In this document: positions 403 through 51,851 of the stretch, one piece after another
Numbering within the stretch: the stretch's first letter is position 1
Layout: each line of letters starts with the position of its first letter
Source of the DNA: Perkinsus chesapeaki ATCC PRA-425
Taxonomy: Eukaryota > Protista > Perkinsozoa
DNA length: 64,000 nucleotides
Reading direction: 5' to 3'
NCBI GenBank assembly: GCA_013115145.1
Contig: JAAPAO010000038.1
Coordinates: 1 to 64,000, forward strand
Translations under genes and position numbers: made by a program
The notes under the pieces: model-generated
Databases searched by the model: none
Told to the model about the DNA's origin: nothing
What the model saw: the letters and a program-made list of their open reading frames with translations, nothing else

Positions 403-1330
403 ATGGCTCAGCAATCTGGTGTGCCCGAGTTTAAGCTCTTGTTGGTTGGTGATGGTGGTGTTGGGAAAACCACTTTGGTGAAACGTCATCTTACTGGAGA
501 ATTTGAGAAGAAGTATATCCCCACTCTTGGCGTCGAGGTACTTAATCGATTTTTTATGTTGGTCATCAAGTTGACCTATTTTGTATCCTACCTGCTTCTC
601 GGAAAGATTCCACCTTTAGGTACACCCGCTGAAGTTCATGACCAACTGTGGTGAGATTATCTTCAACGTCTGGGATACCGCTGGCCAAGAGAAGTTCGGC
701 GGTCTTCGAGATGGCTACTACATCCAAGCAAGTGTCGTCTCCCCGACTAACTTGTCATTTCCGCATCTTTCAGGGCCAATGCGCTATTATCATGTTTGAT
801 GTCACTTCTCGTATCACTTATAAGAACGTTCCCAACTGGCATAGGGACATTGTTAGGGTCTGCGAGAATATCCCAATTGTTCTGGTGGGAAACAAGGTCG
901 ACGTTAAAGACAGACAAGTAGGTGGATGATTCTCGATATAGTGCGTTGTTACTGTATCTTACTTGCTCAGGTCAAGGCACGTAACATTCAGTTCCACCGC
1001 AAGCGTAATCTACAATATTATGATTTATCCGCTCGTTCGAACTACAACTTCGAGAAGCCCTTCCTTTGGCTTGCAAGGAGACTAACGAACCAGCCCCAGC
1101 TCGTTTTCCAGGTTAGTTTGGGGTGGTGGTTATACATGTTGTTTTGCACTCGAGAGGTCCTAGGGTCGATCCCCGTATGCGGTATTTCTGTAAACGTTTG
1201 TCGTTTCCTTTAGGGAGAGTTTGCCAAGGCACCCGAGTTCCAGATCAACCCCGAGCTTGTTGCCCAACACGAGAGAGAGCTCCAGGCTGCCCAAGACCAG
1301 GCAATTGACGATGATGATGACGACTTGTAA
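403..1330 (+). CDS. RAN: Ran GTPase, 5 exons (403-537, 620-727, 774-917, 971-1111, 1214-1330)
   Basis: Spliced translation gives [41 protein letters not shown] and the acidic C-terminal tail DDDDDL*. All four introns restore the frame. Confidence 0.98.
567..587 (+). repeat. Near copy (20/21) of the 22-bp motif CAAGTTGACCTGTTTTGTATCT, in Ran intron 1
   Basis: caagttgacctattttgtatc compared with 11613-11634. Confidence 0.75.
728..773 (+). other. GC-AG intron (Ran intron 2)
   Basis: YYIQ|gcaagt...tttcag|GQCAII; only a GC donor restores the invariant Ran sequence. Confidence 0.9.
1120..1187 (+). pseudogene. Degenerate tRNA relic (Val/Ala-like) inside Ran intron 4 (1112-1213)
   Basis: GTGGTGGTTATAC (D-arm-like), TTTGCAC (anticodon-loop-like), GAGAGGTCCTAGGGTCGATCCCCG (variable loop and T-arm), then TATTT. 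The stems are broken. Confidence 0.7.
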
Positions 1331-1765
1331 CTGCTAAGTCGTTCGGTTGTCCCACAGATGACAGATGCATCGCGGGTGACAGTAACATTTCTTTCTCTTA
1401 CTTGTTATTGTGTTTGATGGCACAGAGTTGGATGGGGCAAACTGCTTGCCATTGAGATTAGTTCCCTCCGCTGGGGTTGGGTAGATTGATTACACTTTAA
1501 GGTGGTATAGATATCCTTAGCAACTCGTTTTTCGGGGTCTAGGAGCAACTAGGCTGGGCTGATGGAGTATCTTAGATATAGCTCCCCTATGCACAAACAG
1601 ATACATGCTTTAAAAGTTGGTCCTTACATTTCTACTAAGTGCCCGAGATTCACCTCAATGGGACGAGTTTGTTAAAGGGCAAGGGTCATCCGAGGACTCA
1701 TTTCTAATTGTAAAAGTACAGTACGAGAATATGTGGTTGGGTGTAGTTATTGTCCGTTCCGAGTT

Positions 1766-2785
1766 ATGGATGAAGTATATACTCCAATAAATACTAAGTC
1801 ATCAGCGCCGTCGTCGTCGTCCAACAAAACATTACGGCTGCCTTCAGAGGCCTTTTTAGCCACCCCAAGTGAATCTGGTATAAGCAGTATGGGTAGTTTG
1901 TCGCCATATGGCACACCGACTCCAATGACCACGAGTACACCAGGAAGCGCTCTTTCAGCTTTACAAGAAAGTTATGATATGAGATGTGGAGATCGTATAG
2001 CGATTGGTGGTTATGGTTTTATATACACTGCAAGATGTCGAGATTCTGGTCAAACTGTTGTGGTTAAACATGTTATAAAACCACCTTATGAAGGAAGATT
2101 CACGGATACACCAAAATGTGATGTTGAAGCTGAACTTCTTCATAAATGTAAAAATCTTGGTTTGAATAATATCAAGTCTTGTTCTGGTGGAGTTACAACT
2201 ATATTTGATGCTTATTCGGATATCGATTCACTTTATATGGTTTGCAAATATGAAGGTAATGACCTCCAGAGAATCATAGAATCTACTTACTGTGGTGGTG
2301 AAGATTCTACCAGCAGCCCTTCTACATTAGACTGGTATACAATTCGTGATTCAGTTCTGGGAACTCTGACGGCCCTTCATCATTGTGGTATATTACATAA
2401 TGATATCCGACCAGAGAACATTACCTACTATACCGACCAGGACTTCAACAATAGGTCAACTACTGCCAAGTCAACGAACCCCACTGTAAAACTCATAGAT
2501 TTTGGTTTATCCACCACATGCCATTGTCCTGCTCACTGTAAGCTTTTATCCCATTCACACGAGTATGCTAACGCTACAAATGGTATTCGGCAAAGTGCCA
2601 TTCGGCAGGCTTGGTTGAACTGTACTGATGATGAATTCAAATTATGCAGCGAGATTGAGTGTACCAACGCGATCGAAATGATCGAAGATTTATCCGGCAT
2701 AGACAACGATGAAGCTGAGTGGGTCGGCGATGCAACAGAAGATGTTGCCGCCATTTTCACCCCGTCTGTGACTCACAGTTTGTGA
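1766..2785 (+). CDS. Intronless protein-kinase-like protein, copy 1 (subdomains I-VII only)
   Basis: IAIGGYGFIY (Gly loop), VVVK, LHNDIRPEN, VKLIDFGLS; no recognisable APE or DxWSxG afterwards. First ATG at 1766 (the ORF track starts at an upstream GTG, 1733). Confidence 0.8.
   Translation: MDEVYTPINTKSSAPSSSSNKTLRLPSEAFLATPSESGISSMGSLSPYGTPTPMTTSTPGSALSALQESYDMRCGDRIAIGGYGFIYTARCRDSGQTVVVKHVIKPPYEGRFTDTPKCDVEAELLHKCKNLGLNNIKSCSGGVTTIFDAYSDIDSLYMVCKYEGNDLQRIIESTYCGGEDSTSSPSTLDWYTIRDSVLGTLTALHHCGILHNDIRPENITYYTDQDFNNRSTTAKSTNPTVKLIDFGLSTTCHCPAHCKLLSHSHEYANATNGIRQSAIRQAWLNCTDDEFKLCSEIECTNAIEMIEDLSGIDNDEAEWVGDATEDVAAIFTPSVTHSL
1940..2575 (+). repeat. 636-bp near-identical direct repeat (partner at 4290-4925)
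   Basis: About 6 substitutions by eye between the two kinase cores; identity drops abruptly on both sides. Confidence 0.95.
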
Positions 2786-3959: not shown

Positions 3960-5066
3960 ATGCGTATGAAGAATTCGGCACTTTCTTGTTCGAGTTGCCT
4001 CGTCCTCGAGGGCAGTTCACTGGCCTTCCTCCATTTTCCTATGATTCGCTGCAGTATTTTAGTTATTTCGTTAATGTCAGCGTCAAGCGTTAGATTGGTC
4101 TCTGAGACCGCGGAGTCTCCTACTCGACGACCCAGTCCTGCAAAGAACATTATACAACTAGATTTGAATGACAATGGGATAGCAGAAATGCAAATCGTGT
4201 CCAGTCCTCGCTCGGTCGAAACCATAAAGGTCGACGATGACGACCTCTGCTGTTCGCCGCTCATGCTCACTCCCCGCCTAACCTACGTGCCAGGAAGCGC
4301 TCTTTCAGCTTTACAAGAAAGTTATGATATGAGATGTGGAGATCGTATAGCGATTGGTGGTTATGGTTTTATATACACTGCAAGATGTCGAGATTCTGGT
4401 CAAACTGTTGTGGTTAAACATGTTATAAAACCACCTTATGAAGGAAGATTCACGGATACACCAAAATGTGATGTTGAAGCTGAACTTCTTCATAAATGTA
4501 AAAATCTTGGTTTGAATAATATCAAGTCTTGTTCTGGTGGAGTTACCACTATATTTGATACTTATTCGGATATTGATTCACTTTATATGGTTTGCAAATA
4601 TGAAGGTAATGACCTCCAGAGAATCATAGAATCTACTTACTGTGGTGGTGAAGATTCTACCAGCAGCCCTTCTCCATTAGACTGGTATACAATTCGTGAT
4701 TCAGTTCTGGGAACTCTGACGGCCCTTCATCATTGTGGTATATTACATAATGATATCCGACCAGAGAACATTACCTACTATACAGACCAGGACTTCAACA
4801 ATAGGTCAACTACTGCCAAGCCAACGAACCCCACTGTAAAACTCATAGATTTTGGTTTATCCACCACATGCCATTGTCCTGCTCACTGTAAGCTTTTATC
4901 CCATTCACACGAGTATGCTAACGCTCCGAGTGATATTCAAAAAAACGCCATTCAGCAGACGTGGTCAAGTTGCACTAATAGTGAGTTCAAGCGGCGCTGT
5001 CTGATTGAGTTAATGAACGCTTCTACTCAACTTTCATCGCTGGAAGCTCTGTTCTTCCGCAAATAG
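3960..5066 (+). CDS. Intronless protein-kinase-like protein, copy 2
   Basis: Same kinase core as 1766-2785, with a different S/T/P-rich N-terminus and a diverged but alignable C-terminus. Start codon uncertain. Confidence 0.8.
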   Translation: MRMKNSALSCSSCLVLEGSSLAFLHFPMIRCSILVISLMSASSVRLVSETAESPTRRPSPAKNIIQLDLNDNGIAEMQIVSSPRSVETIKVDDDDLCCSPLMLTPRLTYVPGSALSALQESYDMRCGDRIAIGGYGFIYTARCRDSGQTVVVKHVIKPPYEGRFTDTPKCDVEAELLHKCKNLGLNNIKSCSGGVTTIFDTYSDIDSLYMVCKYEGNDLQRIIESTYCGGEDSTSSPSPLDWYTIRDSVLGTLTALHHCGILHNDIRPENITYYTDQDFNNRSTTAKPTNPTVKLIDFGLSTTCHCPAHCKLLSHSHEYANAPSDIQKNAIQQTWSSCTNSEFKRRCLIELMNASTQLSSLEALFFRK

Positions 5067-7785: not shown

Positions 7786-8971
7786 CTATAAGTCAGTGGG
7801 CATGTACCCCAGCACAACAGCCGCAGGCAACGCGTTCCTGCTATAGATAGTGTGGCGAACACTCTCTTCGATTTGCTTATTTCTTTTCACTCTTGCCTCG
7901 TCATGCTCAAGCCACATCAAGTAGCCCATACCCTCACTCTGTCCATGGCCGCCACCTGTCTTGCTCGTCTCGCATGGGGTCATCTTTATGGAACTTCCCA
8001 GCAGTAGTCTTAGTTGCCAGTCGGTATACTTGATGAAATATTCGCACGAGCTGTCGGGAATGTCGAAATCTGGCACCGTCTCCGTTGTAACCACATGCTT
8101 TCTGTTATATAAATCGTGAACGAGTCGTACACTTTTCTTATCTTCGTTCAATAGATTTCCCCTGAGAAACCACTCCAATGGCCCCCTCTTACCCTCTCTG
8201 CCGAGTACGACATTTCTCACCTGGTGCTGTTGAGAGCGAGTATACGAAATTCCGAGTAACCCGACTGCCAGCTGGCCCCGACTTTGATATTCTTCTTCTT
8301 TTGTTTGGTCTTTGTTCCCTTCCCCAACGTCCTTTTTACTTCTTTATTGTAGCAGACATCGAACTCGATATCGCATGCCTACACTGAGCATCCGACTTAA
8401 TTGCCTTTCATCCTACATTTTCCTCGGTGAAACGATCAGTAAATGCTTTCTCCAATTTAAGGTTGAGAATGCTCCACGCCACGAATGAATCGCTCGGAAA
8501 CGTGATGCCAAGTGATGTCGCATCTCGCTTGTACACAGGTGATTCACGATAAAGGAACTTGGAAAGTTCCTCCATTAGATCTCTACATCTGGTGGTCCGA
8601 TTCGAGGTGAGAGAAAAAAATTGCCTGGACACTTTGAAAAATAGCTCCGAGTCGAACAGACCTTCCAATTCTTCGCTCGTGTATGTCGTCACCACCCCCC
8701 TGACAGAACCAAGCTGTGAACAGTCTGATTAAGCCGCCATTGTATCTCACTTGGCCGTCGTTTCTTCCATCCATAACCGTGGGACTGTTTTGATACGTAT
8801 GGGTAGGGAGTCGGGAACCTCCTCTACGAAAGCCTTTATTTTAACGCCTCTCTGGTCCACCGAGTTATCCCACGAGAATTCACAGTCAAAGTGTTCAGCC
8901 TTGTGACCCTTAGCCGATGCCGACGCGCACTCGGCAACGAGTACTAAGAAGCCAACAGTTTTACACAACAT
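7786..8971 (-). CDS. Lineage-specific secreted protein, multi-exon, tandem copy A
   Basis: Signal-peptide-like MLCKTVGFLVLVAECASASA; same exon order and motifs as 6197-7368. Confidence 0.7.
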
Positions 8972-10020: not shown

Positions 10021-10044
10021 TACAAGCTTTCCCTGGTGGACGTA

Positions 10045-16477: not shown

Positions 16478-16993
16478 ATGAGCTCGGCGACCGCCCTTCG
16501 CAGTGCGCGGCCGAATGACGAAGAACTTGAGTTGAAATTGTGGCGTTACTCGGTCGGGATTATCCCCATTGGCATCTTCTTCTGGTCGTGGTAAGCCACT
16601 TGGTACCTGCCAACCTGCCAGAGTGTTCACTCAGGGCTCTCCTCAACATGGTATCCGGCAAGGTGCCATTCGATTTGGGAATTGTCAGCTTCGCGCTGAT
16701 AGTCTACACCGGTTTCGTTGGCATGCTGAATAAAGATGGCGGGTGACGTTCTATCATCCGTTGCTTTTAACTTTTCTTCCGGCAGGTCGTACCAAACCGC
16801 CAGACGTTTTCGCCAGCTGGTCTACTTCTCCCATGGATTCCTTTCATTCAACTATCTCTTGGGGGCGATAGTCGGACGGGCTCGTCTCGGCTTTGCGATT
16901 TACTGCGGCACCTTCACGGCTATCTGGTTCATTCTCATGATAGTTGTTGGTAGGGCAGCTCGGCGATATGAGCTGGCATTCAGTCAGTTATAA
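16478..16993 (+). CDS. Small multi-pass membrane protein (about 4 TM), 3 exons (16478-16590, 16635-16742, 16786-16993)
   Basis: Clean GT-AG splicing gives MSSATALRSARPNDEELELKLWRYSVGIIPIGIFFWSWALLNM...FILMIVVGRAARRYELAFSQL* with four hydrophobic segments. Confidence 0.75.
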
Positions 16994-20401: not shown

Positions 20402-20747
20402 GGTGCACTGAAAGATTCCCTGGGCTGAGCTTACGTGAAGTTGACATAAGCGTTCAAGACAGGCTGGGTTCGCTGCATAGGGGTTATTAACCTGGGCTGG
20501 CCTCGAGGGAATTGGTAATGACAGCAGTTGACAAAAATAAGGCGGAGCGAAGCTGATGGGCGATATGGTTAATTGAAGAAATTCAACAAGAGTTCAAATG
20601 GAAATGAATGGTTTTATTGGGTGAACAGCATAGACAGTAGAAAACACAACGGTGGTGGTAGTTAAGTGTTGTAAGGTAAGAATCACAGAAAGTGTACGAT
20701 GCGATAGATGAGCAGGAACAAGGCGTTCGCCTAAGACCATCATACTC

Positions 20748-20782
20748 AAGGTTCCGGGTTCTATCCCACCACTCGTCATTTT
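20748..20782 (+). pseudogene. tRNA 3'-half relic, not assigned to a confirmed intron
   Basis: AAGGTTCCGGGTTCTATCCCACCACTCGTCATTTT: variable loop, T-arm, acceptor strand and oligo-T. Confidence 0.65.
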
Positions 20783-20887
20783 ACTAATCAACATATTTAT
20801 CAAACTTATCAACGAGGACAGCATTACTCAACTAGAACATCATAAACTAACGTTGGGTGTTTTTGTGACGCCATGACGTCCGACTCC

Positions 20888-30372: not shown

Positions 30373-30422
30373 TTATTAAACATCCATTTTACCCTATATT
30401 AGAGTGCGGATTTTAATACAGT

Positions 30423-31690: not shown

Positions 31691-32078
31691 TTAAACAGAT
31701 GACTAACAACTGAGCAATAACCCTGCTCGCTAGACACGGTGATCGATAAGGAATAACGACAACTACAATCTCCGACTAAGAGTGTCCCTGCCAGCGACTC
31801 GCTGGACGCTTGGTGGCTGCTGCCCCCAGATCAGATCCGATGGCCTGTCCTTCCTACTTCACTCCTTACAACCCAAGCATCTTCCTTCACTTACTTCCTT
31901 ATTATGTTTTCGAACGATGGCTCGGCGATAAAAGCACCCCTAACAAATTTCATCCGGTATCGTTTTGAAAACAACCATGATTATCACTTGGATCCCACTT
32001 CTCAGAGATAGACTACAAATAATATCCTACAAATCCCGACCTCTCCCACCAAACGCAAGCTTCAACCTAAGATACCAT

Positions 32079-35000
32079 CTATCCAGAAATAGCCTCCAAT
32101 GGTGGCACATCACTCTCATCATAGTCACCATGTGTTCCCCTCTCAACTTCCTTTAATAAATCATCATCATCGTTATTAACTATCCCCAAAGATACGCTCT
32201 TACTCAACGGCAGCTGCTTCGCTCCGCTAGAAATGACACACTTCTCTTCCTTCTCAACTTTAGACGATCTAGTCGGCGGGAAATTCTAAACACAAGTAGA
32301 ATAATAAGCACCACTCGCCTCTTTATATTTTACTAATTTAACTACTTCCCCATATGAATCCAGAAAGAGCTCCCTTTCAGCACTAGAAGCTCCCCTCGGC
32401 ATCCAAACAGGCAAACACACATTGCCATCGTTCCAATCGCCCCCTAGTAGGTCTATCAGTTTGCTGAATTTGAAGCTGTAGAACTGTACCACCGAGCTCG
32501 AGAGGTCCTCCCGAGACACGCGCTATCATTTCGAATTCTTCGGAGCGTATAATATTCTGACAAACATTATCACCTTCGCTCCGTCTTTTTCAGCTTTCTG
32601 CTCGGCGGCCACTCGTAACAGGCCAGCCCTGTCCGCCCGGGGCATTTCGATTCTAAGTAAAACGTGACGGGATCGAACTCACGACCTTCCGCTTTAGGAG
32701 CAAGAATACTAACCTACTGCTCTATCCTTACCTTAATGCACCAGTTGTCTTACTTCGCTTTACCGACGATGCATCCACAAGAACTTCACAAGGCGTTCTC
32801 AACTGAGTTAACTTATCCTTTATTATACACCTGCGATGATACCGTCATATCAGGTGTCGAGTCACTAGCCTTCCACCTAACTTTTTCAGTCAAAGAAGAA
32901 AATTAGAACAGAAAATTACCCACAGTAAAAACACGATATTTTTTTCACCCCTAACATTACCAAACGTTAAGCAATATACCTCCGTAAAGGAGAGCGTGCA
33001 GCCTCTACCAGAGCCGAAGAGCTCTCTACGCCTTAGAACCCTAGTTGAACACAGACCACACTTCTTCCAACCCAAAGCCGCTCCACGCTCCATGTTAACA
33101 TTTCCCTCCTTCGACCCGCACCTTATATAATTAGGTTGAACATCCACATCTATTAAACTGGTATCCAAGTAAGCCGGCACATCGATCTCAATCACCACCA
33201 TACCGGGACTTCCAAACTCGTCAATATGGAAATTATACTTTCCTTCATTGCACTGCCGTATCTGATCCCAAAGGTCCCAGGTTCGATCCCCGGTGCCGGC
33301 GTTTTTATATATTATTCTCATTCCACAATTCTAATGTTCCCATCCGTCTAAAGCCATAAGTAGTATACCAAACTCTTCAACATAAATCTTCGGAATCGAC
33401 GATATCGATCAACCGTTTCATGCCACTATTTGTCCGACAGCCACCAAGATGGTTCTCGCTAATTCGCTTGGAAGTAAACAAGACAATACAGAAGACATAC
33501 CACTGGTCAGCCATAAAATAGACCGTCACGCGCCACAAAATTACCCCTACCTCCCCTCTATGATTCAATGCCTCCGGTATCACTCGTGGTGGCTTCGGTT
33601 CAATTCCTATACAGCCACTACAGCGGAGCGAAGCGATTCACGTTTGCCATTTTTATTACCCAGCCTTTTCTTTTCCCTTTTATCCTTCTCCTCTTTAACA
33701 GCCGCCTGCTCCCTATACATCTCCAACCGTGACTCTTTCGTGTACGCATCTGATAGCTATAATGGAGAGATAACCAAACATCGACATATGGGAGCCCCAA
33801 CCAGAGCCAGCAATTCATTCTTCACAATTTAGAAAATCAATTTCACCATACAACGCCGCAATGTTAACACAAGTAGCAATAAATACTATCCCCAAATTCC
33901 CACTTTAACGGGATCGTCGGATCGAGTATAATGAAGAGTTTTCAAACAGTGAGATTGACACTGTAGATGCTACGGGCATTAACATCAAGCCCATCCTCTT
34001 TGATAAGTCTCGAGCGCTACTTGTGTACACTGCCCCTCAATCCCCCTCTCTGTTATAACCTTTGCTCGGTTTAATATTATTCTCCATTTCATATTTCTTC
34101 CGCTTTATTGAAACATCTGCGAGCTTTTCCAACTCCTTCTCCAACTTACTGATAACTCTGTTCGCCTAATAAATCCTTCTTCGACCTAAGATACCCTTGC
34201 GCATGCGTGCAGATACCTCGATCCTTTCAGTGGGAGTGATCAACGTTCCATCAAGCTGCAACAAGCTCGGCAGCCTCGCTACTATATACTGCCTGCCAAA
34301 GCCCTTATCAGCTCGAGATTTGGGAGAAATATGGTGTAATTAATTCGCACCTCGCTTTCGGCCAATCCATACATGGGTTCCCCAACATATACAAATCCTC
34401 TAAATTATAATTGCACTGAAAATCAAACTCCCGCTTGCGCATGCGTGCAAGCTACCTCCAAATTAGTGATGGAGTCCTTTAGATTTTCGATGTCAATAAA
34501 ATTAACCGTCAAGTCCAACTTCCTCAAACTCTCGCAACGATCCAAGCCTGAAGCAACCAGCTCAACGACAATGATACTACTGCTACTCCGCAGCGGTAGG
34601 TTCTCAAAACAAAGCCCGAGAATAGTAATAACGACTGCGAAACTGCATAAAACGCATCACGTTTATATTACAGCTCGCATGCCACTATACTGTTTTACTA
34701 CGCACAGGCTATCACAGTGGCCGAGTCTCTATGGAAAGTGCTTACTATATCACACAAAGCCATAAATTAATAAAAACTACGCTTGTCACAATTTCAAAAA
34801 TAACGAATACGATTTCTTAACAGTCCAGCACGATAAAACCCAAAACCCAAAACCCGTTATTATTACGGCGAACCTGGCTAACCGACTTCTATCCCGATCC
34901 CCGCCATTATTACCTTCGATCTTGTCTATATTGTTTAAGGCAACATTAAGATATTCCAGTTCCTTCAATTTATTAAGATTCTCCAGCTTACCAATAACAT

Positions 35001-35662
35001 TATTTTGAAGTAACAATATTCTTATTCTTCGACATCTTTCTCCCAAGCATTTATCTATACTTTCAATCTCTTCTTGATGGAGAGCTACCTAACACAGCCT
35101 GCGGAACCTTACTAAGGACGGCGATAGGAGCCCCATCACAGCACAAGGTCTTGTCCCCAATAACAACAACAACATATTGCACGATTCGTTCTGACGCAAA
35201 AATTACTATTGCAAAGAAATCTAATTAATTCGCCTCGCACGTAACTACTACTTTAGGGATGCACCCTGACTAAGCAGCAAAGCCCAAACTGTGGGTTCTC
35301 AGAGGTTACCCAGCTAACCTCGAGTGTTTTCGGCCCCTTTCATACCCACCCAGGGCAATCTCACAATCAACGCCCCTGCACTCGTTAAGTCGGCAGAGTA
35401 ATTCAAGAACACTGCTGATTCAGCAGTGCTGAAATGCATGTCACAGCTAGGGTCACCTTCACAGCTCAAATAGTGGAGAAACCAGTTCATAATAAGAATT
35501 AAATAACAAGCAATAGCCTCGAACTCCAATCTCCAGAATTCCATATTATAGACTACAACTAGGTTACTCGGTTAACCGATAGCATACCTCTTCTAGATCA
35601 GCCAGAATCCCCTCGTTATGCTCCGCTCGTTTACGAATAAGCTCCTCAGTCAAAGGAGGCAT
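32079..35662 (-). CDS. LRRC6: Dynein axonemal assembly factor LRRC6/DNAAF11 (tilB/Seahorse) ortholog, multi-exon
   Basis: MPPLTEELIRKRAEHNEG, LLQNNVIGKLENLNKLKELEYLNVALNNI, LRKLDLTVNFI, RQCNEGKY, LDTSLIDVDVQPNY, SSVKRSKTTGAL and a C-terminal DVPPL. Confidence 0.95.
32653..32731 (-). pseudogene. 79-nt LRRC6 intron consisting of a near-full tRNA relic (Arg-CCU-like loop)
   Basis: gtaagGATAGAGCAGTAGGTTAGTATTCTTG-CTCCTAA-AGCGGAAGGTCGTGAGTTCGATCCCGTCACGttttacttag; its removal joins GALR to IEMP. Confidence 0.85.
33270..33306 (+). pseudogene. tRNA 3'-half relic (Phe-like), antisense within an LRRC6 intron and abutting the acceptor at 33262
   Basis: AAAGGTCCCAGGTTCGATCCCCGGTGCCGGCGTTTTT. Confidence 0.85.
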
Positions 35663-35748
35663 TATCAAAAATACTAAACTGACAGGACCTCTATACCCTG
35701 TAAAGTTAACATCGTAGAGGAGGAAACGGTATGAGAATCAATCAAAAT

Positions 35749-36716
35749 TTACATGCCGAAAACTCTGTATAAAAGAGCGAAGAACATAGCGGCGCCTGCA
35801 CCAAACATCGCACTATTACCTAAAAGAGAAACAGTGAGAACGCCGTCGTTGAACAGGAAAAATATATCACGAAATATTCGAGCGAAAATTGTTATGGAAA
35901 AGGACCACGCGCAACCAGCTACTACCAAGGGCCCTCATGAGGGTCTCTGGCCTGCCACTTCCAACGGGAGTAGTTGCATTGGATTTAGGATGCCACCAAT
36001 ACCTAATAATACACCCCCTGGGATTCGAACCATAAACCATAGGGTGCAGAGCCAGTAGTACTATCCAACTAGACTAAAGTCCCTCTCATATTACACTCCT
36101 CCAGAATCAGCATCCTTGATAGGCAGCCATGCATCCTCTTCCTTCGCCCTCTCAACAACCTCCTCAGGCACCTTATCCGCCTCATATAGCTTATTCATCT
36201 CATCAGGCGTCCACTATTCAAGAGCCATTTGCACCCATGCACACGATAGCATAATTACCGGACGATTGGCTTCTGGCGGCGATTTGTATACCAATGACCG
36301 CTTCCTATTTTCCGTACAGAAATACCTCCCGCTGGCCACATTGCGAACCACCCAGGCTCTGCTGCTGCTCCTCCGAAATGCACTGAGCCCCACAACACCT
36401 ATGACGAGGTATGTTACTCATTACCACGATGGCTGATATGGCTACACCGGCAGCTCGATAGAGAGTAGGCTATCGTTGATAAGTTTATACTGTCGGTCCC
36501 AAAAGAATTATGGACGTGAAGATATCTCACAGAAACAGTATTAAAAGATACCCTCTTCCTCGCCAAGAGAGCCGTCATAGTAAATCATCACACATAAATA
36601 TATATTATTTTCCACATTATTACATTCCCACCACAATGCTTGGAGGCGGAGGAATTGGTATCAGGAAGCCTACTGAAGAGAAAGCCAACAAACCCCGTCA
36701 CCACTTTTCCCAGCAT
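35749..36716 (-). CDS. Small multi-exon protein with a WW/OCRE-like aromatic motif and a C-terminal hydrophobic anchor
   Basis: Spliced reading DAWLPIKDADSGGVYWWHPKSNATTP...GNSAMFGAGAAMFFALLYRVFGM*, with a basic presequence-like N-terminus. Confidence 0.6.
36003..36094 (-). pseudogene. 92-nt intron consisting of a near-full tRNA relic (Gln-CUG-like loop)
   Basis: gtaatatgagagggacttTAGTCTAGTTGGATAGTACTACTGG-CTCTGCA-CCCTATGGTTTATGGTTCGAATCCCAGGGGGTGtattattag. Confidence 0.8.
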
Positions 36717-36993: not shown

Positions 36994-39900
36994 ATGAGGG
37001 GACGGCTAATAGTATACTGTGGAGGAATATCATTGGGTGGGGTTATATCAGCTGACACAGCAGGTGACCTTCCGAGTATCCTTCCTGAATCAACGTAAGA
37101 TACTTTTGAGCTCAACTTGGATACGCCGTTCTAGGAACGATAATCGATTAGAAGAAGCAATAAGCAATTTAGTTGACTATAAAATAGCGAAGGAATTGAA
37201 GGTAAGATACTCTATTCAAAATATTAATAGTGCGCTGGCAGGGGTTGATGGAAGAGAACATGCGATTACGAGAAAAGGTGGAGGATTTAGATAGGAGGTA
37301 GCACAAGAATCTTTGCTCGAACCGTGCATGATACACAAGAGGTCGAGCAGCGCGGCATCATCATTATTAGATCACTTCAAGACACGTCCAATCGTCGAAA
37401 ACTGGCGTATCTCACAGATGCCATCAGAACAGATGAAACCACCGGCATGCTGACGAGCACAATGTGGAGGATCCTTACCGGTGCGATGATAATGTTCATG
37501 CAGGCAAGTTCCCTCCCTCCCTCCGAACAAGGGGGGTCTTCTATTATATCTTGCCATGAGATCTACAGAACACTTCTGGCCTCTCGCTTTAGCATTAGTA
37601 TGCTCGAGATTCAAAAGTTCGATGTCGTGCCTGCCGCTCGTCCAACTGCCACCGCAGCGGCCGATACTTTCGTAGGTGTTAATTACCCTCTCCTTAGGCC
37701 GGTTTTGCTATGCTAGAGGCAGGCTCAGTAAGAGTGTTCAATGTTCAAGCCATCCTGATGAAGAATCTACTGGACGTTTGCATCAGTAATAACTTCATCA
37801 TATCCTACTACTAACATCATCATCATTAGGTCCGCTGGTCTGGTGGCTCATGGGATGGGGCATTGCTCTCGGATATACTACCGATCCCACAACTGGTGAT
37901 CTAACAAGTGGATCACAGTTCGCTGGTAAGCAAAAGGTCCCCGGTTCAAACCCGAGCCATGACATATTTTCTACCGTTAGGATTGCTACTTCAGTTTCAA
38001 CCTCAAATTCGCCAACCTATGAATTCCCAGGCTTCTATAGCTTATCTAAACAATTTAAGACTCACTGAAACCAACCCACTCGGATCTCTCGCGAATTTGT
38101 GTCTCATGGAATCTAGTGACTTAGAATTGTTTATTAATAATTTATCAACCTCAGGTGGCAGTGGTTTCGCTGGCACTGGCCTCACTGAATACTGTGTTGA
38201 ATTCGACTCAACCACTGGTGACTGTATCGATGAATCACCAACCCCTATCGGAATGCCCAAGTTCCACCCCGATGAGTTCTTCTTCTTCTGGACCTTCTCA
38301 GCAACAGCTTCGACAATCGTCAGTGGTGGTGTGGCTGAACGAGTACATTGTACTTGATAATTTCCTGGCGCGTGACGCTTCCTTGTTCAGGTCCGTTGCT
38401 CTTCCTACTTTTTATTCTCTTCGCTTATGTCTGGTTTTATCTATCCCATTCTGGTGGCGTGGCTCTGGAGCGGTCACGGTTGGCTCAGCAAACCCGCTGA
38501 TGGCATCGATGCGGCCTACTACGACTTTGCTGGTGAGAATAAATGATAAATCCCTCTTCGTTAAATATTCCTCAATGATTCTCTCTGACATGCGCCCGTC
38601 CAGTTGAACACCTCCTAACGCAGTCACTTGAGATTTGATTCCCCAATCGTTAAATGTGGGGCTTGTGTCGGGTTTTTGAAACATGCGGACAAAACCGGTA
38701 TTATCACCTTCAGGTTCTGGAGTGGTACATTTGACAGGAGGTGTAGCAGCCTTGGTTGGAGCTAAGATTCTCGGACCTCGAAAGGGACGCTTCGATGAGA
38801 TGGTCGATCAGACGGAGTTTGTCCCACATTCAATTCCACAGATTGTATTGGGTAATGCAACAATCCCGGGTTCGATTCCCACGCCCTCCGCTTTTAGGTA
38901 CATTAATTCTCTGGTTTGGATGGATTGGCTTCAACGCTGGTTCTACCAGTAGTATGGTATCCATAAGCGATGCCAACAAGGCAGCACGCTCCGCTATGAA
39001 CACTGTTCTGTCGGGAGCCTCGGGTAAGCACCTTGAACTGATTTTGAGAATGGCAGATTCGTCGAATTCGTTTATATTCTTCAACTTGCACCGTGTCTTT
39101 CTATCACAACAGTAGTGTCCCTGATGAGTCGTCATTGTAGACTAGTATGACGTAACCAGGTTACTACGCGACTCACTGCAATTTGTATTGAGCCGGATTC
39201 GTCATGGATACTACATCCTCACGAAATAGGAGACTGTCGCTGTAGCCGAGTGTGTTGCGAGCTCTAAACTGAAGTACCACCGAGTAGAATCCAAAAGAGC
39301 AAGAGATAATCTCAGTTGTACTGTTTGCTTGAGAGATTCGTGTATCTAAAGGAGTGGTACATAAAGATGCTTGTAACAACTTTATTGATATATAACATAT
39401 ATAGAAATGTGAAGAGATTATATTATATATAACGTATGATAAAGTAATCTCTTCGTATTCCTAACTCGACGATCGTCACTGTAATCTATCGACTCCTATC
39501 CCCTCAGGTGGCTTCACCCTCTTTGTCATCCGTCTGGTATTCTTCAATATGTACGACGTTGCTGGAGTCTGCAATGGATGCCTCGCTGGATTGGTAGAAG
39601 CTATCCCTCTTCATTACCGAACATATCGATATGATCAACTTGTCAGGTGTCCGTCACTGCCGGATCGGCTAATGTCACGTCATTCAGCGCCATAATCATT
39701 GGCATCATCGGAGGATGTCTGTAAGATCAACTAACTCGATTGTCATAGTAGATGAGGCATGGGTGGACTATAAATGATCATGGGCGCAACAGGAACCCTT
39801 GAATCGATCACTGGTTGACTGCTTGATCCAGATGCGCAACTTCTGTGGTCAACTTCGGGGTTGAATATACGTGACACTAATTGCGGAGCAAGCGGAGCTT

Positions 39901-41513
39901 ATTATCTGGAAACGGATCATTTCGCCGTGCCGTGCGTACGAATTATTTCCCGATAACCAGAGCGAACTAGCTGACAGTCTATACACGAAAAGATTTCCCT
40001 TTGTCTGAGAATACCTAGAAAATTTGCAAACTTTGAAAACTACGGTGTGTTGAGTAGAAGCGGAAAAGCCTTTTTTGCGGAAAATGCAGCCTGTGGGATT
40101 CGAACCCACGACTTCTTCTCTAAATCGTTTCCATGCGATTTGATCACTCGCTCGCACCATCAAAGCGATAGGCGACTGATGACGAAGAAACAATGAGCAA
40201 ACTAACCGCTAAGCGAGCTCCGTCATCACGAAGCCTAGTATATATCGTCTGATTAGTATACAATTCTCGCGCAGCACTCCTCCTTTCACCGGGCAACAGC
40301 TACAAGCCAGTGTAGGAGTTCAGCTATGCCGGGGGGGGGGGCTGACTCACTCGTAAAAGGCCACTGAGCAGCAGCAGCCCTATGGAGTGTTATGCCCCCA
40401 TAACGATACGAAGAGAAAAGATATAAAACGATTTATACTATTTTGATAAGATAATATATCTCCTCTGTATAGTGTACAGCGGTATATAGTATTATGATAG
40501 CAATCATAATACATCTCCTGCCTCCTGAGCACTACATTTGGACCTCAGTTACCAGACTGCTTCTCGATTCCTTGCCAAGCATCACATCGATGATCCAATT
40601 GACGCCTTTGCCGTTCATGGTATGAGCGGTCTGTGGGGCACCATCGCTTGTGTCCTGTTCGACTATGGCAGTGGATTCAGGTGAGGTCATTCCTTATCTT
40701 TCCACATCCTCTTCAATACTCCCTTTCAGTGTCTTCAGTCAAGCCGAGGTCACAAGAATCGGCCCTAGTAATTACGAGGCAGCCGTCAATGTTGGCACAC
40801 AACTCGGGGTAAGCTTGTGTGAGCCATCTTCGAAGATATTAAGTTAATATTTTACACACAGCATTATATCACTAGCTGATTTCTTATTCTTCATGTGGAT
40901 TTCGATATCGCTCAACAGACTTCGCCTAGTGAACGTAGAACTTTTCCACGTTGCAGGATTTTGCATACAGAAGCACTTCTCTTGTTCGCAAAGGATTCCC
41001 AGCTCCCAAGATAACATCAGCTGTCGTTGGCTTTGTGGCTCGAACCAAACTCGCTCCGCCGGATGTCAAGCTCTCGTAGATCTATGTGGCTCGTCGAAGA
41101 GAATCCTTCTTGCTTGTCTTCCTCATTGACGGCGAGCATCGATCCCTAGACTCCAGTTGGGTGGTAACTTTTCAGGTTAACCTTCTCGGTGCATTGATGA
41201 TCATATTGTGGTCCGGTTTTTGGAGCACGCTGGTCTTCCTTATATTCCGCAGAGTGAGTGATCCTTCGTTTTTACGGTTTTTCTATCAAATTCTCTCCAG
41301 TTTGACCTCCTCCACGCCAACGAGGAAAACGAAGTCTTCGCGCCCGACGATTACATGCAGTTCTCTTCGAGGAGGAAACTGAATGACGTTTATCCAGATG
41401 ATGAATCAGAATATTCAGAAGGCAAATCTAATCGATCGAAGGTATCTGGGTCGAATAGGAGCAGACTTAAAGCTGCAATTAATGAAACAAAGGATGATAC
41501 CGAAGCTGATTAA
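36994..41513 (+). CDS. AMT: Ammonium transporter (Amt/Rh family), multi-exon
   Basis: FMQ|[63 protein letters not shown] and [12 protein letters not shown]. The start at 36994 (signal-peptide-like) is tentative. Confidence 0.96.
37504..37697 (+). other. GC-AG intron in AMT
   Basis: MFMQ|gcaagt...ccttag|AGFAMLEAG; the phase-0 junction restores the conserved Amt signature. Confidence 0.85.
37926..37980 (+). pseudogene. tRNA 3'-half relic at the start of an AMT intron
   Basis: gtaagcaaaAGGTCCCCGGTTCAAACCCGAGCCATGACAtattttctaccgttag; the acceptor is either 37980 or 38154 (both in frame). Confidence 0.8.
38852..38897 (+). pseudogene. 46-nt AMT intron consisting of a tRNA 3'-half relic
   Basis: gtaatgcaacaatcCCGGGTTCGATTCCCACGCCCTCCGcttttag; its removal restores [12 protein letters not shown]. 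Confidence 0.85.
40077..40150 (-). pseudogene. tRNA relic (Ser/Leu-like), antisense in a long AMT intron
   Basis: Reverse complement CGAGTGATCAAATCG-CATGGAAA-CGATTTAGAGAAGAAGTCGTGGGTTCGAATCCCACAGGCTGCAtttt has a perfect T-arm; the 5' acceptor strand is missing. Confidence 0.85.
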
Positions 41514-43199: not shown

Positions 43200-43308
43200 C
43201 GAATAAAAATATCCTTTCCAACTTCACCCCTCTCATCAACACAACCAGTCAGTAGAGAGAACAACATATACATTGGCACGCATGCGCAACATCACAACAG
43301 TAGCAGCT

Positions 43309-46766
<3,458 letters not shown>

Positions 46767-47335: not shown

Positions 47336-49396
47336 TTATTTCGCCGCAACCGCGGGAGCTGCGGTCGCCGGCGCCTCCTCCTCAGCCTTAGGCTTCTTCT
47401 GAGTGGCGGCATGGAACCACTCCCGATTAGGGGTCTTGCGGAAGACTCCTTCGCCAAGTTGCTTCTCGATCTGATTGCTTATTAATGCTACTCCGCCATT
47501 ATTAACCGTATTTTTATTACCTTCACCATACCATCCGGCTTATACAAGGCTGCCGACTTCATCCCATTACAGATATCCTCTATCTCCTTCCGAGAGTACT
47601 TACGATACTTATAACTGTACTTGGTCTCGTCACCAGTGATTTCCGGATACTTCTCCTGAGGCAGCGGAAGTAATCCAAGTACACCGTCGAAACGCTTGAA
47701 AGGGCCAGTTTGGTCGAACATTTTGCGCTTCGGAGAGCCTATGTAACTCTTAACGGTGGGTCTAGTGTAGAACAAAGAGTTCGTCGTAAGGGAGTAAAAC
47801 TATACAATATACGACGACGATAACTGAATAACTCACGCTGAAGCCTGACTAACTCACTGAACGATAAGCCTCCCCTCGAACTAATATTTCCGAACCGCCG
47901 CTTACTAACCTTAATCTCCTTCTCTGTTTCCGGTACACTAGCTGGCGCCACAGCAGCAGGGCTCTTGTGCTCCTGAGGCGGTGGGCTACTAAGACTGTAG
48001 GACACCACAGCAGAATCCATCTCAACAGCTGGCACTCCAGCGGCGGCCATCTGATGAATCCAACAACAATACTAACAGCAAGAATGCCTATATGTATCTA
48101 CCTGAGGCATCATCTCCGACTCAGGGTACTTAAGACCATAGGACACCACCGCGGAGTCTACCTCAACCACGGAGATCCTACTGCCGTACTAAATCAATAC
48201 AACAGTCACGACCGCCGCGACACAAAGAGCTGTCCCCACCTGCTCGACAGGGCCGCCATTCATCCTCCTGCCCTTCCCCTTGCCTTTGCCCTTACCCTTG
48301 CCTACCAAAACTCATACCAAACTTTCCACAACTTTATTACCTTTTCCCTTGCCACCCTTTCCCTTCCCGTGATAGAAGCCGAACTCGTCCATACCGGCAT
48401 AAGGGTTGTAATTGTTATTGTTATACCTGACAGAGCCATCTCCGACGGCAACGCCCCCGCTACTACCCTTGAGGATTGCTTGCTTGAGGCTTGCCGTATC
48501 CAAGAGCACCTGATCCAAAGATTCTCACTGCGCCACGAAATTCATGGACTAGTACTGGTAGGAGTGCGAGTTGTTGCTGTGGGTTTCTGGGCTTTGTCGA
48601 GATCAGGGAAAAGTGTAAGCATGAAATGCTCAGCCTTGACCGCTGTATGGATTGGGTTGCCATTATATTTCTGATTTCTTAGCCAAAGTGCAACATTCTC
48701 ACATTTATCTTCAGTAGTAAATCTAACATACCTATTATTAAATAATAATAAAGATACTAAATAGGTTAATAATGTTACCAATGATCATTAACATCTGGAC
48801 GAATATCAACTATATCTTTATCCATATCACATGGAGCATCTTTCAATACACAATTCTTGAAATCATCTACTGTTAATGACTTCGAATCGACATCTCTAAA
48901 AATACATAACCAAGAATCGAACCCACGACCTTTACATTACAAGACCGCCGCTCTACCACTACCTCACAATTAGAGTTGTTCTCTGCTGGAATTCAGGTAA
49001 GCAAGGCTTCACCATGGTCTTCGTAGCATCCAATGCCACCTTATCCGACGGGACAGCCGACAACACATTGGCGACTTCCTCAGGGGTAGTGTTGAGCTCG
49101 GATATAGTGCCGAGGCTGATCGACGGAAGCTTGTGATCCACCAGCTTCAATAGACCACTTACTTGAATAGATCGGCGATGGGCAAATACATCTGTGAGTT
49201 CATGCTCGACACCAGAGACGGCTCTTTCTGACACCTCTAGCCATACAATATAACCAATAGTATGCCGACCTACCCGAAGATTGTCCTTGGATAGAACACG
49301 TTCTACTGTTGATTTAATAAGGTCATTCCTTTTAGCCTTCTCCTCTGCCCCCTCCTGAGCGGTGGTGGCGGTGGTGGTCTTGTTATTATCTTCCAT
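47336..49396 (-). CDS. La-related protein (LARP4-like, La motif + RRM), tandem copy 1
   Basis: IKSTVERVLSKDNL, VALDATKTMVKP, RTTLI-RD, YVRF and GNPIHTAVKAE parallel LARP4 (YYFSRENL, VRP, CIVILRE, YITF, GKPIMARIKA). G/K-rich low-complexity C-terminal part. Confidence 0.75.
48594..48967. repeat. 374-bp near-identical tract shared by the LARP paralogs (partner at 51059-51432)
   Basis: About 5 substitutions by eye, including across introns, while the flanking exons are strongly diverged. Confidence 0.95.
48896..48967 (-). pseudogene. 72-nt intron consisting of a tRNA-Thr(UGU)-like relic
   Basis: gtgagGTAGTGGTAGAGCGGCGGT-CTTGTAA-TGTAAAGGTCGTGGGTTCGATTCTTGGttatgtatttttag; its removal joins RTTLI to RDVD. 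Confidence 0.85.
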
Positions 49397-49860
49397 TATT
49401 ATATTATCTCAGTTTGATAAAAGCAGTACAACGGCGGTATTGAAAACCTCAAATTCGGAGAAAGAGGAAGAAGCTCCGGGATGTACAAGTTACTGAAGCA
49501 TATACAACATTCTCACATAACCTTCCACGCATCTTGCACGCTCAACCTAAAGATACCTCCCACACCACCATCCAGCCCACACCTCGAAGCCAACGACAAT
49601 CGCGCGCGCCCAGTTGATCGATTTGTTCCGCGCGACCGACTGCAACGCAAATCTGCCTCCAGCTGGTTGAAAATTTTAGTTATTGTTGTATATGAATCAT
49701 TATTGATAATATAAAACCGTTAGGACTATTTCATTATCGCCGCCGCCACCGCCGCCGCCATCATAAAGGTATTATTCCTTTTACCCGAAGGGGTGGACGA
49801 CGGCGGCTGGGGGGGCGATGTACAGTAGAGGTTGTTATTAACTATACAAACTGATAATGT

Positions 49861-51851
49861 TTAGGAAGCTGCCGACACCTTAGGTGCTTCTGGCTTCACT
49901 GCCGGAGAGGCGGTGGCTGCTGCTGACGATGATGCCTTGCGGCCTCCTCCGCCACCAGTCGCAACTGGACTGCCTTCGACAATCCACTCCCTGAGAAAAG
50001 CAATCAACAGCGTAGCTGACAGCTCTCATCTACCTGTTCGGTTTGTCCCGAATCAAACCTTCACCCACTTGCTTTTCGGCCTACAAACGTTGGATAAACT
50101 ACCATCGAATGAGGGCCTTACTTTGACCATTCCCTCCGGCTTGTAGACCGCTTCGGCTGGCATGCTTTCGCAAATCGATTCGATCTCCTCTTTAGTATAC
50201 TTTCTGTAATCGTACTTGTACTTCGTCTCATCACCAGCGAACTCGGAAGGATCAATGATCTAAGACCGAAACTGCCAGTGATGAGTCCATCATCCTCGGA
50301 TGGTCACCTGTTCGACGGGTTCATGGGGAGCCCCACTGCTGCTCATGCGCCTCCTGCCTCGACCACCTTTACCTATACAGCAGATATCCAGCAGGTCTTT
50401 AGGATAAATGCTATGAAATTTCAAGCCGCTAGTAGAGACTGAAGTTCCACTAATCCTTCCAATACAATCGTCGAGCGGCACACAGTTATCAGCGAATTAG
50501 AAGTGTGGGAGAGTTGTGTTATTATTATTGTCAAAGCTTAGTAGATCAATTTGCTGAGCAACCACTCGCGTTTTCGTATACCACTAGATAGATCCTGATA
50601 AACGCCCTATGTTGGAGAGACATCTATATGGATGATTTGAAGGAAATTTGGTATTATTGTTAAAAGCTACGAGTCCTACGCCTGTAATACAGGAAATGAC
50701 GGGAATTGGGTATTATTAAACTAAATATTGAACAACCACCGTACACAAAGGGCTATATTTCAAATAGGAAGGATTAGCTTATGGATGATTACCTTTTCCC
50801 TTTCCCTTGCCCTTAGTTGCTGATGGATGGTAATAACCGTACTGGTCCACACCGGCATAGGGGTTATACGAGCTATATCTGAGCAGGACTAACTGTGCTC
50901 AGCGATGAAGCCGTCCCTATTACCCCTGATATGGTGTAGTCGCCGGCGAACTCGGTGTAAAGGCTGGACTGCCGTAATCTATTGAAAAGGAGTGGGAGAG
51001 AGGCGTGTCGGAAATAGGATGGCTACTCAGGGCAGGCGAGGGGTATGCTTCAGAGTTCTTGTCGAGATCAGGGAAAAGTGTAAGCATGAAATGCTCAGCC
51101 TTGACCGCTGTATGGATTGGGTTGCCATTATATTTTTGATTTCTTAGCCAAAGTGCAACATTCTCACATTTATCTTCAGTAGTAAATCTAACATACCTAT
51201 TATTAAATAATAATAAAGATACTAAATAGGTTAATATTATTACCAATGATCATTAACATCTGGACGAATATCAACTATATCTTTATCCATATCACATGGA
51301 GCATCTTTCAATACACAATTCTTGAAATCATCTACTGTTAATGACTTCGAATCGACATCTCTGAAAATACATAACCAAAAATCGAACCCACGACCTTTAC
51401 ATTACAAGACCGCCGCTCTACCACTACCTCACGATGACTGTTGTCCTCAACTGTAGATCGGGAATAATGGGTTTGATCTGTGTTTTAGTAGAATCCAAGG
51501 CCACCTTAGACGACCCCAATGTCGTTATCGCATTGGCTATCTCTTCCGCTGTGGTATTGAGATCTTCTATAACCTTCGAGCTGCGCATCATAATAATTCA
51601 TACCACTCTTCCCCCAAATAATTACTTGAAAAGGCTGTCCAAACTCATGTACATCTGCGCGTTCATACGGGCAGCAAATGTCTGGTTGGACTAACATAAC
51701 CCCAACTTAACCTTCTCTGTATCATGCACCCTTCTACCTTAAGATACTCCTTCGACAGCACTCCCTCCACCGCTGTCTTAACAGCTTCCAACTTATCCTT
51801 ACCAACCTCTTCCGTCGGCTTCACCTTTTCGTTCTCTTCGTTCTTATTCAT
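49861..51851 (-). CDS. La-related protein (LARP4-like), tandem copy 2
   Basis: Same exon architecture as copy 1 (VKTAVEGVLSKEYL, VALDSTKTQIKP, RTTVI-RD, KYDYRKYTKEEIESIC), ending PKVSAAS*. Confidence 0.75.
51361..51432 (-). pseudogene. Duplicate of the tRNA-Thr-like intron, in LARP copy 2
   Basis: Two substitutions relative to 48896-48967. Confidence 0.85.

Follow-up and report, generated by a model that had tools for sequence, protein, structure and literature searches.

The window analysed here is the whole 64,000-nt stretch at positions 1-64000 of contig JAAPAO010000038.1 of Perkinsus chesapeaki, a parasite of shellfish. Along it lie Ran, Tim44, DNAAF11/LRRC6, a WW-like gene, AMT, a MAP-kinase-like gene (MAPK) and two LARP copies. 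All 14 positions at which a sequence-only reading had reported tRNA relics indeed carry decayed 3' portions of tRNA genes, in which a variable loop, a T-arm with the B box, an 11-nt acceptor strand and an oligo-T run follow one another at tRNA spacing, as in a tRNA pseudogene. Two further relics were found beyond that list, at ~181-216(-) and 29125-29200(+). The features are as follows.

181-216 (-): extra relic ahead of the Ran start codon, with T-arm, acceptor strand and TTTT; 9.8 bits, E=0.089, by construction.
1112-1213 (+): Ran intron 4, near full-length sense relic with core at 1154-1189; 102 nt, GT-AG, phase 0.
20748-20783 (+): relic outside introns, antisense to Tim44, ~240 nt past the Tim44 stop.
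23165-23232 (-): putative Tim44 intron, sense relic; 68 nt, T-run ending 5 nt before the AG.
23433-23501 (-): putative Tim44 intron, sense relic; 69 nt, frame open throughout.
23945-23998 (-): putative first Tim44 intron, nearly all sense relic; 54 nt, read-through meets a stop.
29125-29200 (+): near full-length relic, antisense, within the annotated DNAAF11 gene range; 11.3 bits, E=0.03.
32653-32731 (-): DNAAF11/LRRC6 intron, near full-length sense relic; 79 nt, from frames and splice sites.
33271-33306 (+): antisense relic with intact B box in a larger DNAAF11 intron; best model score, 28.2 bits.
36003-36094 (-): intron of the WW-like gene, near full-length sense relic; 92 nt, orthologous relic in the P. 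marinus intron.
37926-38154 (+): AMT intron 6, sense relic at 37934-37969; 229 nt as annotated, exact protein map (P0006).
38852-38897 (+): AMT intron 9, nearly all sense relic, spanning tRNA position ~35 to terminator; 46 nt, present in three species.
40080-40157 (-): antisense relic with perfect T-arm in AMT intron 39721-40548; from T-arm match and model.
44100-44186 (-): putative intron of the MAP-kinase-like gene, near full-length sense relic; 87 nt, from frames and splice sites.
48896-48962 (-): intron of LARP copy 1, relic from D-arm to terminator; 67 nt, anticodon loop reading Thr(TGT).
51361-51427 (-): intron of LARP copy 2, duplicate of that in copy 1; 67 nt, one further B-box change.

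ARAGORN called no tRNA genes in the window or in the Perkinsus loci L001, L003, L004 and L005, and Rfam returned no tRNA match at the gathering threshold or at E<=10 for the whole window and a 7.9-kb piece. The tRNA covariance search that had been proposed as a check on the relics yielded nothing beyond an 18-nt T-arm at 40093-40110, the sole relic match in Rfam. Pattern scans and a sequence model of our own were adopted after these programs made no tRNA call. The B-box pattern GRTTCRANNCC occurs 12 times in the window versus 2.25 expected, a count reached in none of 100 shuffles, and a B box with at most one mismatch followed by TTTT at +8 to +14 also occurs 12 times (null mean 2.57, maximum 7). 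In anchored alignments, the oligo-T starts +10 to +13 after the B box in nearly all relics regardless of context, which fits a tRNA gene carrying its own terminator. The model, trained on 22 relics, recovered all 14 listed relics and 181-216(-) by construction, since all of these were in the training set; its one new site, 29161-29182(+) (E=0.03), reads as part of a near full-length relic. In 113 kb of dinoflagellate gene loci it gave two matches, in a search run with default filters on rather than with filters off.

The relics are not working tRNAs and no longer fold as tRNAs. No cloverleaf was detected by the tRNA finders, and the T stem pairs in 68% of cells versus 69% in a shuffled control, with 45-59% for the outer three pairs; because the stem is not maintained, what is conserved is a sequence element rather than a fold. 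Outside the T-arm, pairwise identity is 0.28-0.32, that is, random, and the anticodon regions differ. This points to many donors rather than one SINE family and bears out the claim of tRNA derivation without such a family: likeness is limited to the two LARP copies, which stem from a gene duplication, and the relics have no shared head, body and tail. Their description as 3' portions holds in that every relic has one, but several are near full length (Ran, WW-like, MAPK and DNAAF11). When relics are aligned on the B box, the introns of Ran, the WW-like gene and MAPK have their 5' splice site at tRNA coordinate <=1, and counting by hand places it at about coordinate 1 or lower in DNAAF11 too. 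Split or permuted tRNA genes, excised by tRNA processing, were dropped as an explanation because the halves neither pair nor fold. The relics do carry GGTTCGANNCC, the B-box consensus, but no functional Pol III gene, a combination that is the sequence mark of an ETC-type TFIIIC site.

As the sequence-only reading had it, 11 relics (10 independent) are sense-oriented in short GT-AG segments of Ran, Tim44, DNAAF11/LRRC6, the WW-like gene, AMT, the MAP-kinase-like gene and both LARP copies; 20748, 33270 and 40077 fall outside this set, the first lying past the Tim44 stop and the other two antisense in larger introns. Removal of the GT-AG segment restores a frame continuous with homologs in Ran, AMT introns 6 and 9, the WW-like gene and LARP, and the three Tim44 introns and those of DNAAF11 and MAPK are called from frames and splice sites. 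In Ran, the exon at 971-1111 aligns to residues 131-176/177 and that at 1214-1324 to residues 182-215 of PDB Ran chains, and reading through the intron meets a stop. Tim44 was identified by TIGR00984 matches in the downstream exons, the C-terminal exons ending near 20992; NCBIfam matched nothing on the N-terminal exons, so by homology the three Tim44 relic introns are still putative. The length of 23165-23232 is not divisible by 3, and coding-like frames differ on its two sides. At 23433-23501, by comparison, the sense relic and GT-AG sites are present as claimed, but its status as an intron is unproven because the frame stays open, with no in-frame stop over 69 nt.

DNAAF11 was identified by LRR_9 and CS_DNAAF11_C domains; its antisense relic at 33271-33306 lies ~20 nt before a 3' splice site, with the start of the CS-domain exon near 33250. 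In the MAP-kinase-like gene, the sole in-frame stop of 44100-44186 lies inside the relic. A 55-nt alternative of AMT intron 6 (37926-37980) keeps the frame as well as the annotated 229-nt form. Two shallow RNA runs of the species gave one junction, Tim44 21871-22503, where a minus-strand spliced contig joins 21870 to 22504, and none over any relic intron; the kinase gene is matched perfectly in the same runs. A gene finder built for this work on codon usage fused some exons and missed others, and served as a hint only. Several relic segments keep the frame open and may be annotated as exons, which matters for Perkinsus annotation.

The range of 41-92 nt given earlier is exceeded by the Ran intron, at 102 nt, and by the first AMT relic intron as annotated, at 229 nt. 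The earlier observation that the oligo-T adjoins the AG is supported: the two are <=10 nt apart in 8/11 sense relic introns (seven by script, DNAAF11 by hand), which fits a terminator doubling as pyrimidine tract. LINE-type reverse transcription had been invoked for the missing 5' ends, but later shrinkage toward the usual intron size of 40-55 nt explains them better. In P. marinus the LARP intron measures 94 nt versus 67 nt in P. chesapeaki, and the WW-like intron ~280 nt versus 92 nt. Truncated relics begin at tRNA coordinates 32-37 because those introns are 46-69 nt long. The anticodon loop as source of the GTAA donor, which lies at coordinate 35 in both AMT introns, was set aside for a simpler account: when the terminator fixes the end of an intron of 46-55 nt, its start has to fall at ~32-37.

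Comparison with sister species dates the relics. Single-exon homolog searches with the kinase gene at 1766-2782 and a 293-aa gene found no sister-species ortholog, so orthologous loci were not available for Ran, Tim44, DNAAF11 and the MAPK 3' half; P. marinus locus L001 likewise lacks the MAPK 3' part that holds the relic intron, and no ortholog of it was recovered. Four-fold sites are 33-37% identical among P. chesapeaki, P. marinus and P. olseni and are therefore saturated. In five of six comparisons, the 22-nt relic block of P. chesapeaki is matched at 15-17 of 22 positions in the orthologous intron (p=0.0002 to 0.008), with 17/22 for AMT intron 9 in both sister species (p=0.0002) and 15/22 for the WW-like intron in P. 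marinus (p=0.008). AMT intron 9 as a whole is 68-76% identical, versus 36-67% (mostly 43-62%) for other AMT introns, and in P. chesapeaki and P. olseni it also has the donor-specific acceptor strand in common. The P. olseni ortholog of AMT intron 6 is a 53-nt intron with the same relic, and the P. marinus intron has lost it; the LARP ortholog in P. marinus has a degenerate B box. The AMT intron that hosts the antisense relic (39721-40548) is 828 nt in P. chesapeaki, and its counterparts in P. marinus and P. olseni measure 49 and 46 nt. These alignments show that the relics predate the split of the three species and that a block at about tRNA positions 44-65, comprising the variable loop and the T-arm with its B box, has hardly changed over a time in which silent sites became random. 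Neither recent insertion nor the repeated insertion first proposed agrees with relics occupying orthologous introns of three species whose four-fold sites are saturated; the relics are old and kept rather than freshly inserted.

An origin of the introns themselves from pre-tRNA cDNA or pieces of tRNA genes that were inserted into exons in the Perkinsus lineage, with the T-run acting as pyrimidine tract, is a doubtful alternative. The shortest introns are almost wholly relic, and short relic introns are sense-oriented every time. Inside genes, orientation is 11 sense versus 3 antisense (10 versus 3 independent), giving one-sided binomial P values, by hand, of ~0.03 and ~0.05. The AMT positions were compared with dinoflagellates, a check that the sequence-only reading had proposed. 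At the position of intron 9 (38852), homologs of Polarella, Symbiodinium natans and E. voratum have no intron, so that on this comparison it is Perkinsus-specific, and the P. marinus AMT paralogs are intronless. For intron 6 (37926), an intron of S. natans has exactly the same position and phase; a non-relic AMT intron is shared with E. voratum, so at least some AMT introns look older than Perkinsus. Moreover, all of the at least 13 AMT intron positions, relic or not, are common to the three Perkinsus species, so no gain event has been caught, full-length and truncated forms of one relic occur among sister species, and further relics lie between genes, in a UTR or, in antisense, within an intron that was already there.

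That the block is conserved for a role at the RNA level, as a splicing signal (branch region or enhancer) of 46-70 nt introns, seems distinctly unlikely. Perkinsus introns show no clear branch consensus, and the 3' half of AMT intron 9 has adenosines only in its T-loop and at tRNA position 64, where three species keep them. The T-loop does not fit the YTNAY branch motif, however, a motif that neither the relic introns nor many ordinary introns contain. The helix is not maintained, and perfect B boxes persist in antisense relics of long introns and in intergenic relics. In favour of such a role, two non-relic AMT introns carry blocks that are conserved as strongly (17/22 and 20/22), so intron conservation in Perkinsus is not special to tRNA relics and may reflect another intron function. 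It is very improbable that the block persists without selection because the many tRNA genes keep overwriting it by ectopic gene conversion and so renew the stretch that all tRNAs share: this is indeed the best-conserved part of the relics, and tRNA gene copies in Perkinsus number in the hundreds, with unusually many tRNA genes reported for P. marinus (PMC3706591), but the block of only ~20 nt is short for conversion, the AMT intron 9 match between P. chesapeaki and P. olseni extends into the donor-specific acceptor strand, and non-tRNA intron blocks are kept too.

We consider it probable, if not strongly so, that the relics are ancient remains of tRNA genes with Pol III terminators, derived from several donors and lying mostly in very short introns, in which one block has been held by selection. 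Selection would act on the variable-loop/T-arm block as a sequence element, either as a B box to which TFIIIC still binds, a site of the 'extra TFIIIC' type, or as a splicing element of the tiny intron; a B-box function via TFIIIC in the Perkinsus relics is a conjecture. Against this reading stand the non-relic AMT introns with equally conserved blocks, the loss of the relic from AMT intron 6 of P. marinus and the degenerate B box of the P. marinus LARP intron. The terminator T-run would double as pyrimidine tract, and the 5' ends may have been lost by deletions that shrank the introns to 40-55 nt while a usable GT was retained. The wider proposal, that tRNA genes with their terminators seeded new Perkinsus introns and that their B boxes are kept genome-wide as intronic TFIIIC docking sites, appears unlikely; if true, it would connect both the birth of introns and the architecture of Pol II genes with the Pol III machinery.

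No published description of tRNA-relic introns was found in the literature. If confirmed genome-wide, the relics would establish an undescribed link between tRNA genes and spliceosomal introns in Perkinsus: tiny introns consisting largely of a tRNA-gene tail with a Pol III terminator reused as pyrimidine tract, and a Pol III promoter element under selection within Pol II genes across species with saturated silent sites. They raise, in a culturable protist, the questions of whether non-transposon cellular sequences can seed or remodel introns and whether isolated B boxes have a conserved function beyond yeasts and animals.

In animals and plants, tRNA genes, tRNA pseudogenes and tRNA-derived SINEs are small passengers in long introns. 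The Perkinsus relics resemble them as Pol III-type sequences hosted by Pol II introns, but a relic can fill nearly the whole of an intron of 46-100 nt, and conservation of one part of it far exceeds what neutrality predicts. With introners and transposon-derived introns of Micromonas, Aureococcus and Amoebophrya (PMC7789003, PMC11282704) they share an intron body that is a recognisable inserted element supplying splicing signals. Unlike introners, they show neither near-identical copies nor a common non-tRNA body, and come from several tRNA donor types; and whereas introners can be strain-specific, the relics are ancient and common to three species, an age, judged by the saturated silent sites, at which terminal repeats or target-site duplications are not expected to survive. 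ETC (extra-TFIIIC) sites of yeasts and mammals are B boxes standing alone, to which TFIIIC binds although no Pol III gene is present (PMC3395662). The relic B boxes, candidate sites of this type, differ from them in being visible remains of whole tRNA genes and in lying inside tiny spliceosomal introns, mostly in sense and adjoining the 3' splice site. Like ETC sites, they show a B-box consensus but have neither a usable A box nor a tRNA that can fold, and they are kept between species.

Decayed tRNA-gene 3' portions (hereafter relics) were present at every coordinate listed by the sequence-only reading, each comprising an AGGTC-like variable loop, a T-arm with its B box, an acceptor strand of ~11 nt and an oligo-T run. 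The bare B-box pattern occurred 12 times in the window (2.25 expected), and a B box followed by TTTT at tRNA spacing also reached 12 occurrences, where the null mean was 2.57. A sequence-only relic model was trained on 22 relics from three Perkinsus species, so that recovery of the training sequences is by construction; it added one site, 29161-29182 (+), which by eye reads as a near full-length relic. Another relic outside the original list lies at 181-216 (-). Applied to dinoflagellate gene loci totalling 113 kb, the model returned two matches with default filters rather than with filters off. No working tRNA was found among the relics, and T-stem pairing across the 22 relics was 68%, compared with 69% in shuffled controls. 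Outside the T-arm the relics are mutually unrelated (identity 0.28-0.32), and the earlier view that they are not one SINE family is therefore right.

The window is identical in sequence and coordinates to its record, JAAPAO010000038.1; gene positions are taken from the record's calls for 26994-51513 and, for Ran and Tim44, from our own identifications.

Genes of the window
403-1327: Ran, identified in this analysis
~20990-24150 (-): Tim44, from TIGR00984 matches and a spliced RNA contig
36994-41513 (+): full-length ammonium transporter AMT, NCBI protein FOL47_006702
43309-45818 (-): protein kinase, record annotation
within the calls for 26994-51513 (-): long DNAAF11/LRRC6-like gene, record annotation
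within 26994-51513 (-): 293-aa gene, record annotation
within 26994-51513 (-): 134-aa gene, record annotation
within 26994-51513 (-): two paralogous genes of 440 aa and 379 aa, the LARP copies of the sequence-only reading, record annotation

Several further features of these genes were recorded. The second Ran intron (~712-766, +) is a GC-AG intron that begins GCAAGT and ends CAG. Two single-exon protein kinase genes form a tandem pair at 1766-2782 and 3966-5063 (+); they are 87% identical, and the sole relative found off this contig is 53% identical. An RNA contig bridges Tim44 exons over 633 nt (21871-22503, -; GT..AG on the minus strand), which reflects either an intron unusually long for Tim44 or the skipping of small exons. 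Synteny breaks between window 20500-35700 and positions 7800-8630 of the P. marinus locus L001, where the WW-like gene and AMT come immediately after the eIF4E-side genes and the Tim44/DNAAF11 block is missing.

The assignment of relics to introns held for AMT, Ran, the WW-like gene and LARP. Annotated AMT proteins of three species were mapped exactly onto their own DNA, and intron i9 (38852-38897, 46 nt) proved to be nearly all relic. Intron i6, which starts at 37926 with a relic at its 5' end, is annotated at 229 nt; the 55-nt version proposed earlier preserves the frame as well, which leaves two candidate 3' ends. The exons flanking the Ran relic match solved Ran structures at residues 131-176/177 and 182-215, identifying 1112-1213 as an intron, and in the WW-like gene and LARP the exon sequences before and after the relic segment are conserved in P. 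marinus. The relic segments in Tim44 (three), DNAAF11 and the kinase are putative introns called from GT-AG ends, frame behaviour and in-frame stops. Of these, the 69-nt Tim44 segment 23433-23501 is open in frame throughout and could thus be exon. Two small, thin P. chesapeaki RNA runs gave exact window matches and one Tim44 junction, with no read across the relic introns.

Within genes, 11 relics are sense and 3 antisense (one-sided binomial P ~0.03, our calculation), or 10 and 3 when the LARP duplicates are counted once (P ~0.05). All relics in introns shorter than ~105 nt are sense.

Antisense relics
40077: in an 828-nt AMT intron
33270: in a DNAAF11 intron placed by its 3' end
29161: within the annotated DNAAF11 gene range

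As the earlier reading had proposed, the oligo-T run closely precedes the 3' splice site: the AG lies at most 10 nt past the T-run in 8 of the 11 sense cases (seven by script, DNAAF11 by hand). T-runs also occur in antisense and intergenic relics, indicating that the run is the tRNA-gene terminator and not merely the intron's pyrimidine tract. Measured from the B box, the 5' splice site has a tRNA coordinate of ≤1 in Ran, the WW-like gene and the kinase. In LARP and one of the Tim44 introns the value is 13-16, and in the four shortest introns 32-37. In DNAAF11, which lay outside script scoring, a hand count places the splice site near the tRNA start.

We compared orthologous introns among P. 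chesapeaki, P. marinus and P. olseni. In AMT, every pair of these species is 33-37% identical at four-fold degenerate sites, a saturated level. The i9 relic is present in all three species; the i6 relic is found in P. chesapeaki and P. olseni and is absent from P. marinus. The P. olseni copy (L003 1929-1981) has CCA after the acceptor strand instead of a T-run, the only relic seen with CCA, probably by chance (1 in 64). The WW-like and LARP introns of P. marinus also bear relics, the LARP one with a degenerate B box. In 5 of 6 comparisons, the 22-nt P. chesapeaki block corresponding to tRNA positions 44-65 retained 15-17 of 22 matches in the orthologous intron (p = 0.0002-0.008, null of shuffled introns). 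Such retention despite saturated sites indicates that the relics are older than the Perkinsus species and that part of each has been kept. Two relic-free AMT control introns also contain conserved blocks (17/22 and 20/22), indicating that Perkinsus introns carry several kinds of apparently constrained sequence.

The 20/22 block, in relic-free AMT intron 7, holds a second motif, GGCGCGTGACG, conserved in all three species. It occurs five times in the window with at most one mismatch (0.5 expected), often just after TTTC, and its three perfect copies are all in sense orientation relative to the genes that host them. The 17/22 block, in AMT intron 3 (window 37298-37370), corresponds to AAGATACGC; introns of P. 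chesapeaki, P. marinus and P. olseni repeatedly contain either this sequence or AAGATAC with AGGTC after it, and four exact copies were found in the window against 0.34 expected. The motif could represent a further family of relics or an element used in splicing.

Sites of the two further intron motifs
38343-38390 (+): GGCGCGTGACG, window
28318-28328 (-): GGCGCGTGACG, window
33524-33534 (-): GGCGCGTGACG, window
23837-23847 (-): GGCGCGTGACG, window
16738-16748 (+): GGCGCGTGACG, window
from 13971: GGCGCGTGACG, P. marinus L001
2170-2222: GGCGCGTGACG, P. olseni AMT locus L003
1182, 1324, 1787, 3287: AAGATACGC or AAGATAC-AGGTC, introns of L003
10172, 10584, 11169 (-), 32189: AAGATACGC or AAGATAC-AGGTC, window

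Several observations argue against a recent origin of the relics, or one by retroposition as first suggested. AMT intron positions are identical in the three Perkinsus species, and full-length and shortened forms of one relic are found in sister species: the LARP intron measures 94 nt or 67 nt, a deletion between two GTA repeats accounting for the short form, and the WW-like intron ~280 nt or 92 nt. Truncated relics start at the point dictated by an intron length of 46-69 nt counted back from the terminator. Moreover, the antisense relic at 40077 lies in an intron whose sister-species counterparts measure 46-49 nt and lack a relic, and P. marinus has relics without P. chesapeaki counterparts, one in a 5' leader and one an intergenic cluster; relics have thus been gained and lost within existing non-coding DNA. 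The leader relic (L001 5507-5542) precedes the eIF4E start codon by ~25 nt. The cluster (L001 17250-17710), just downstream of AMT, contains three tRNA-like relics, two on the plus strand and one on the minus, and is missing at the matching place in P. chesapeaki and P. olseni.

The broader proposal, that tRNA insertion created introns, fares differently from intron to intron. Neither relic position has an intron in the Polarella and Effrenium AMT homologs, nor does the Symbiodinium natans homolog have one at the i9 position. S. natans does have an intron at the exact i6 position and phase (~0.23 such coincidences expected by chance, our estimate), and one relic-free Perkinsus AMT intron is common to Effrenium. 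Three P. marinus AMT paralogs (L004 and L005, two in tandem) are intronless; the ortholog of the window gene has 15 introns. From these outgroup positions, some introns, AMT i9 among them, may have been born when a tRNA inserted in the Perkinsus stem lineage; for others this is unlikely.

Taken together, these elements are old tRNA-gene relics whose T-arm block is conserved as sequence without a helix, and which in short introns lie in sense orientation with the terminator adjoining the AG. Selection would act on the T-arm block, and the terminator T-run may have been reused as a pyrimidine tract. Conservation of the block through splicing or another intron-based role is still in play, because blocks in relic-free AMT introns are conserved as well. 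An attractive reading is that the B box is a putative TFIIIC-bound site, since intact B boxes occur in sense and antisense relics and also outside introns; it would then resemble an extra-TFIIIC (ETC) site, a B box without a Pol III gene. Full-text literature searches returned no account of Perkinsus introns with tRNA relics, or of introns gained from tRNAs; tRNA genes themselves are unusually numerous in P. marinus, as described by Kojima and Jurka (PMC3706591).
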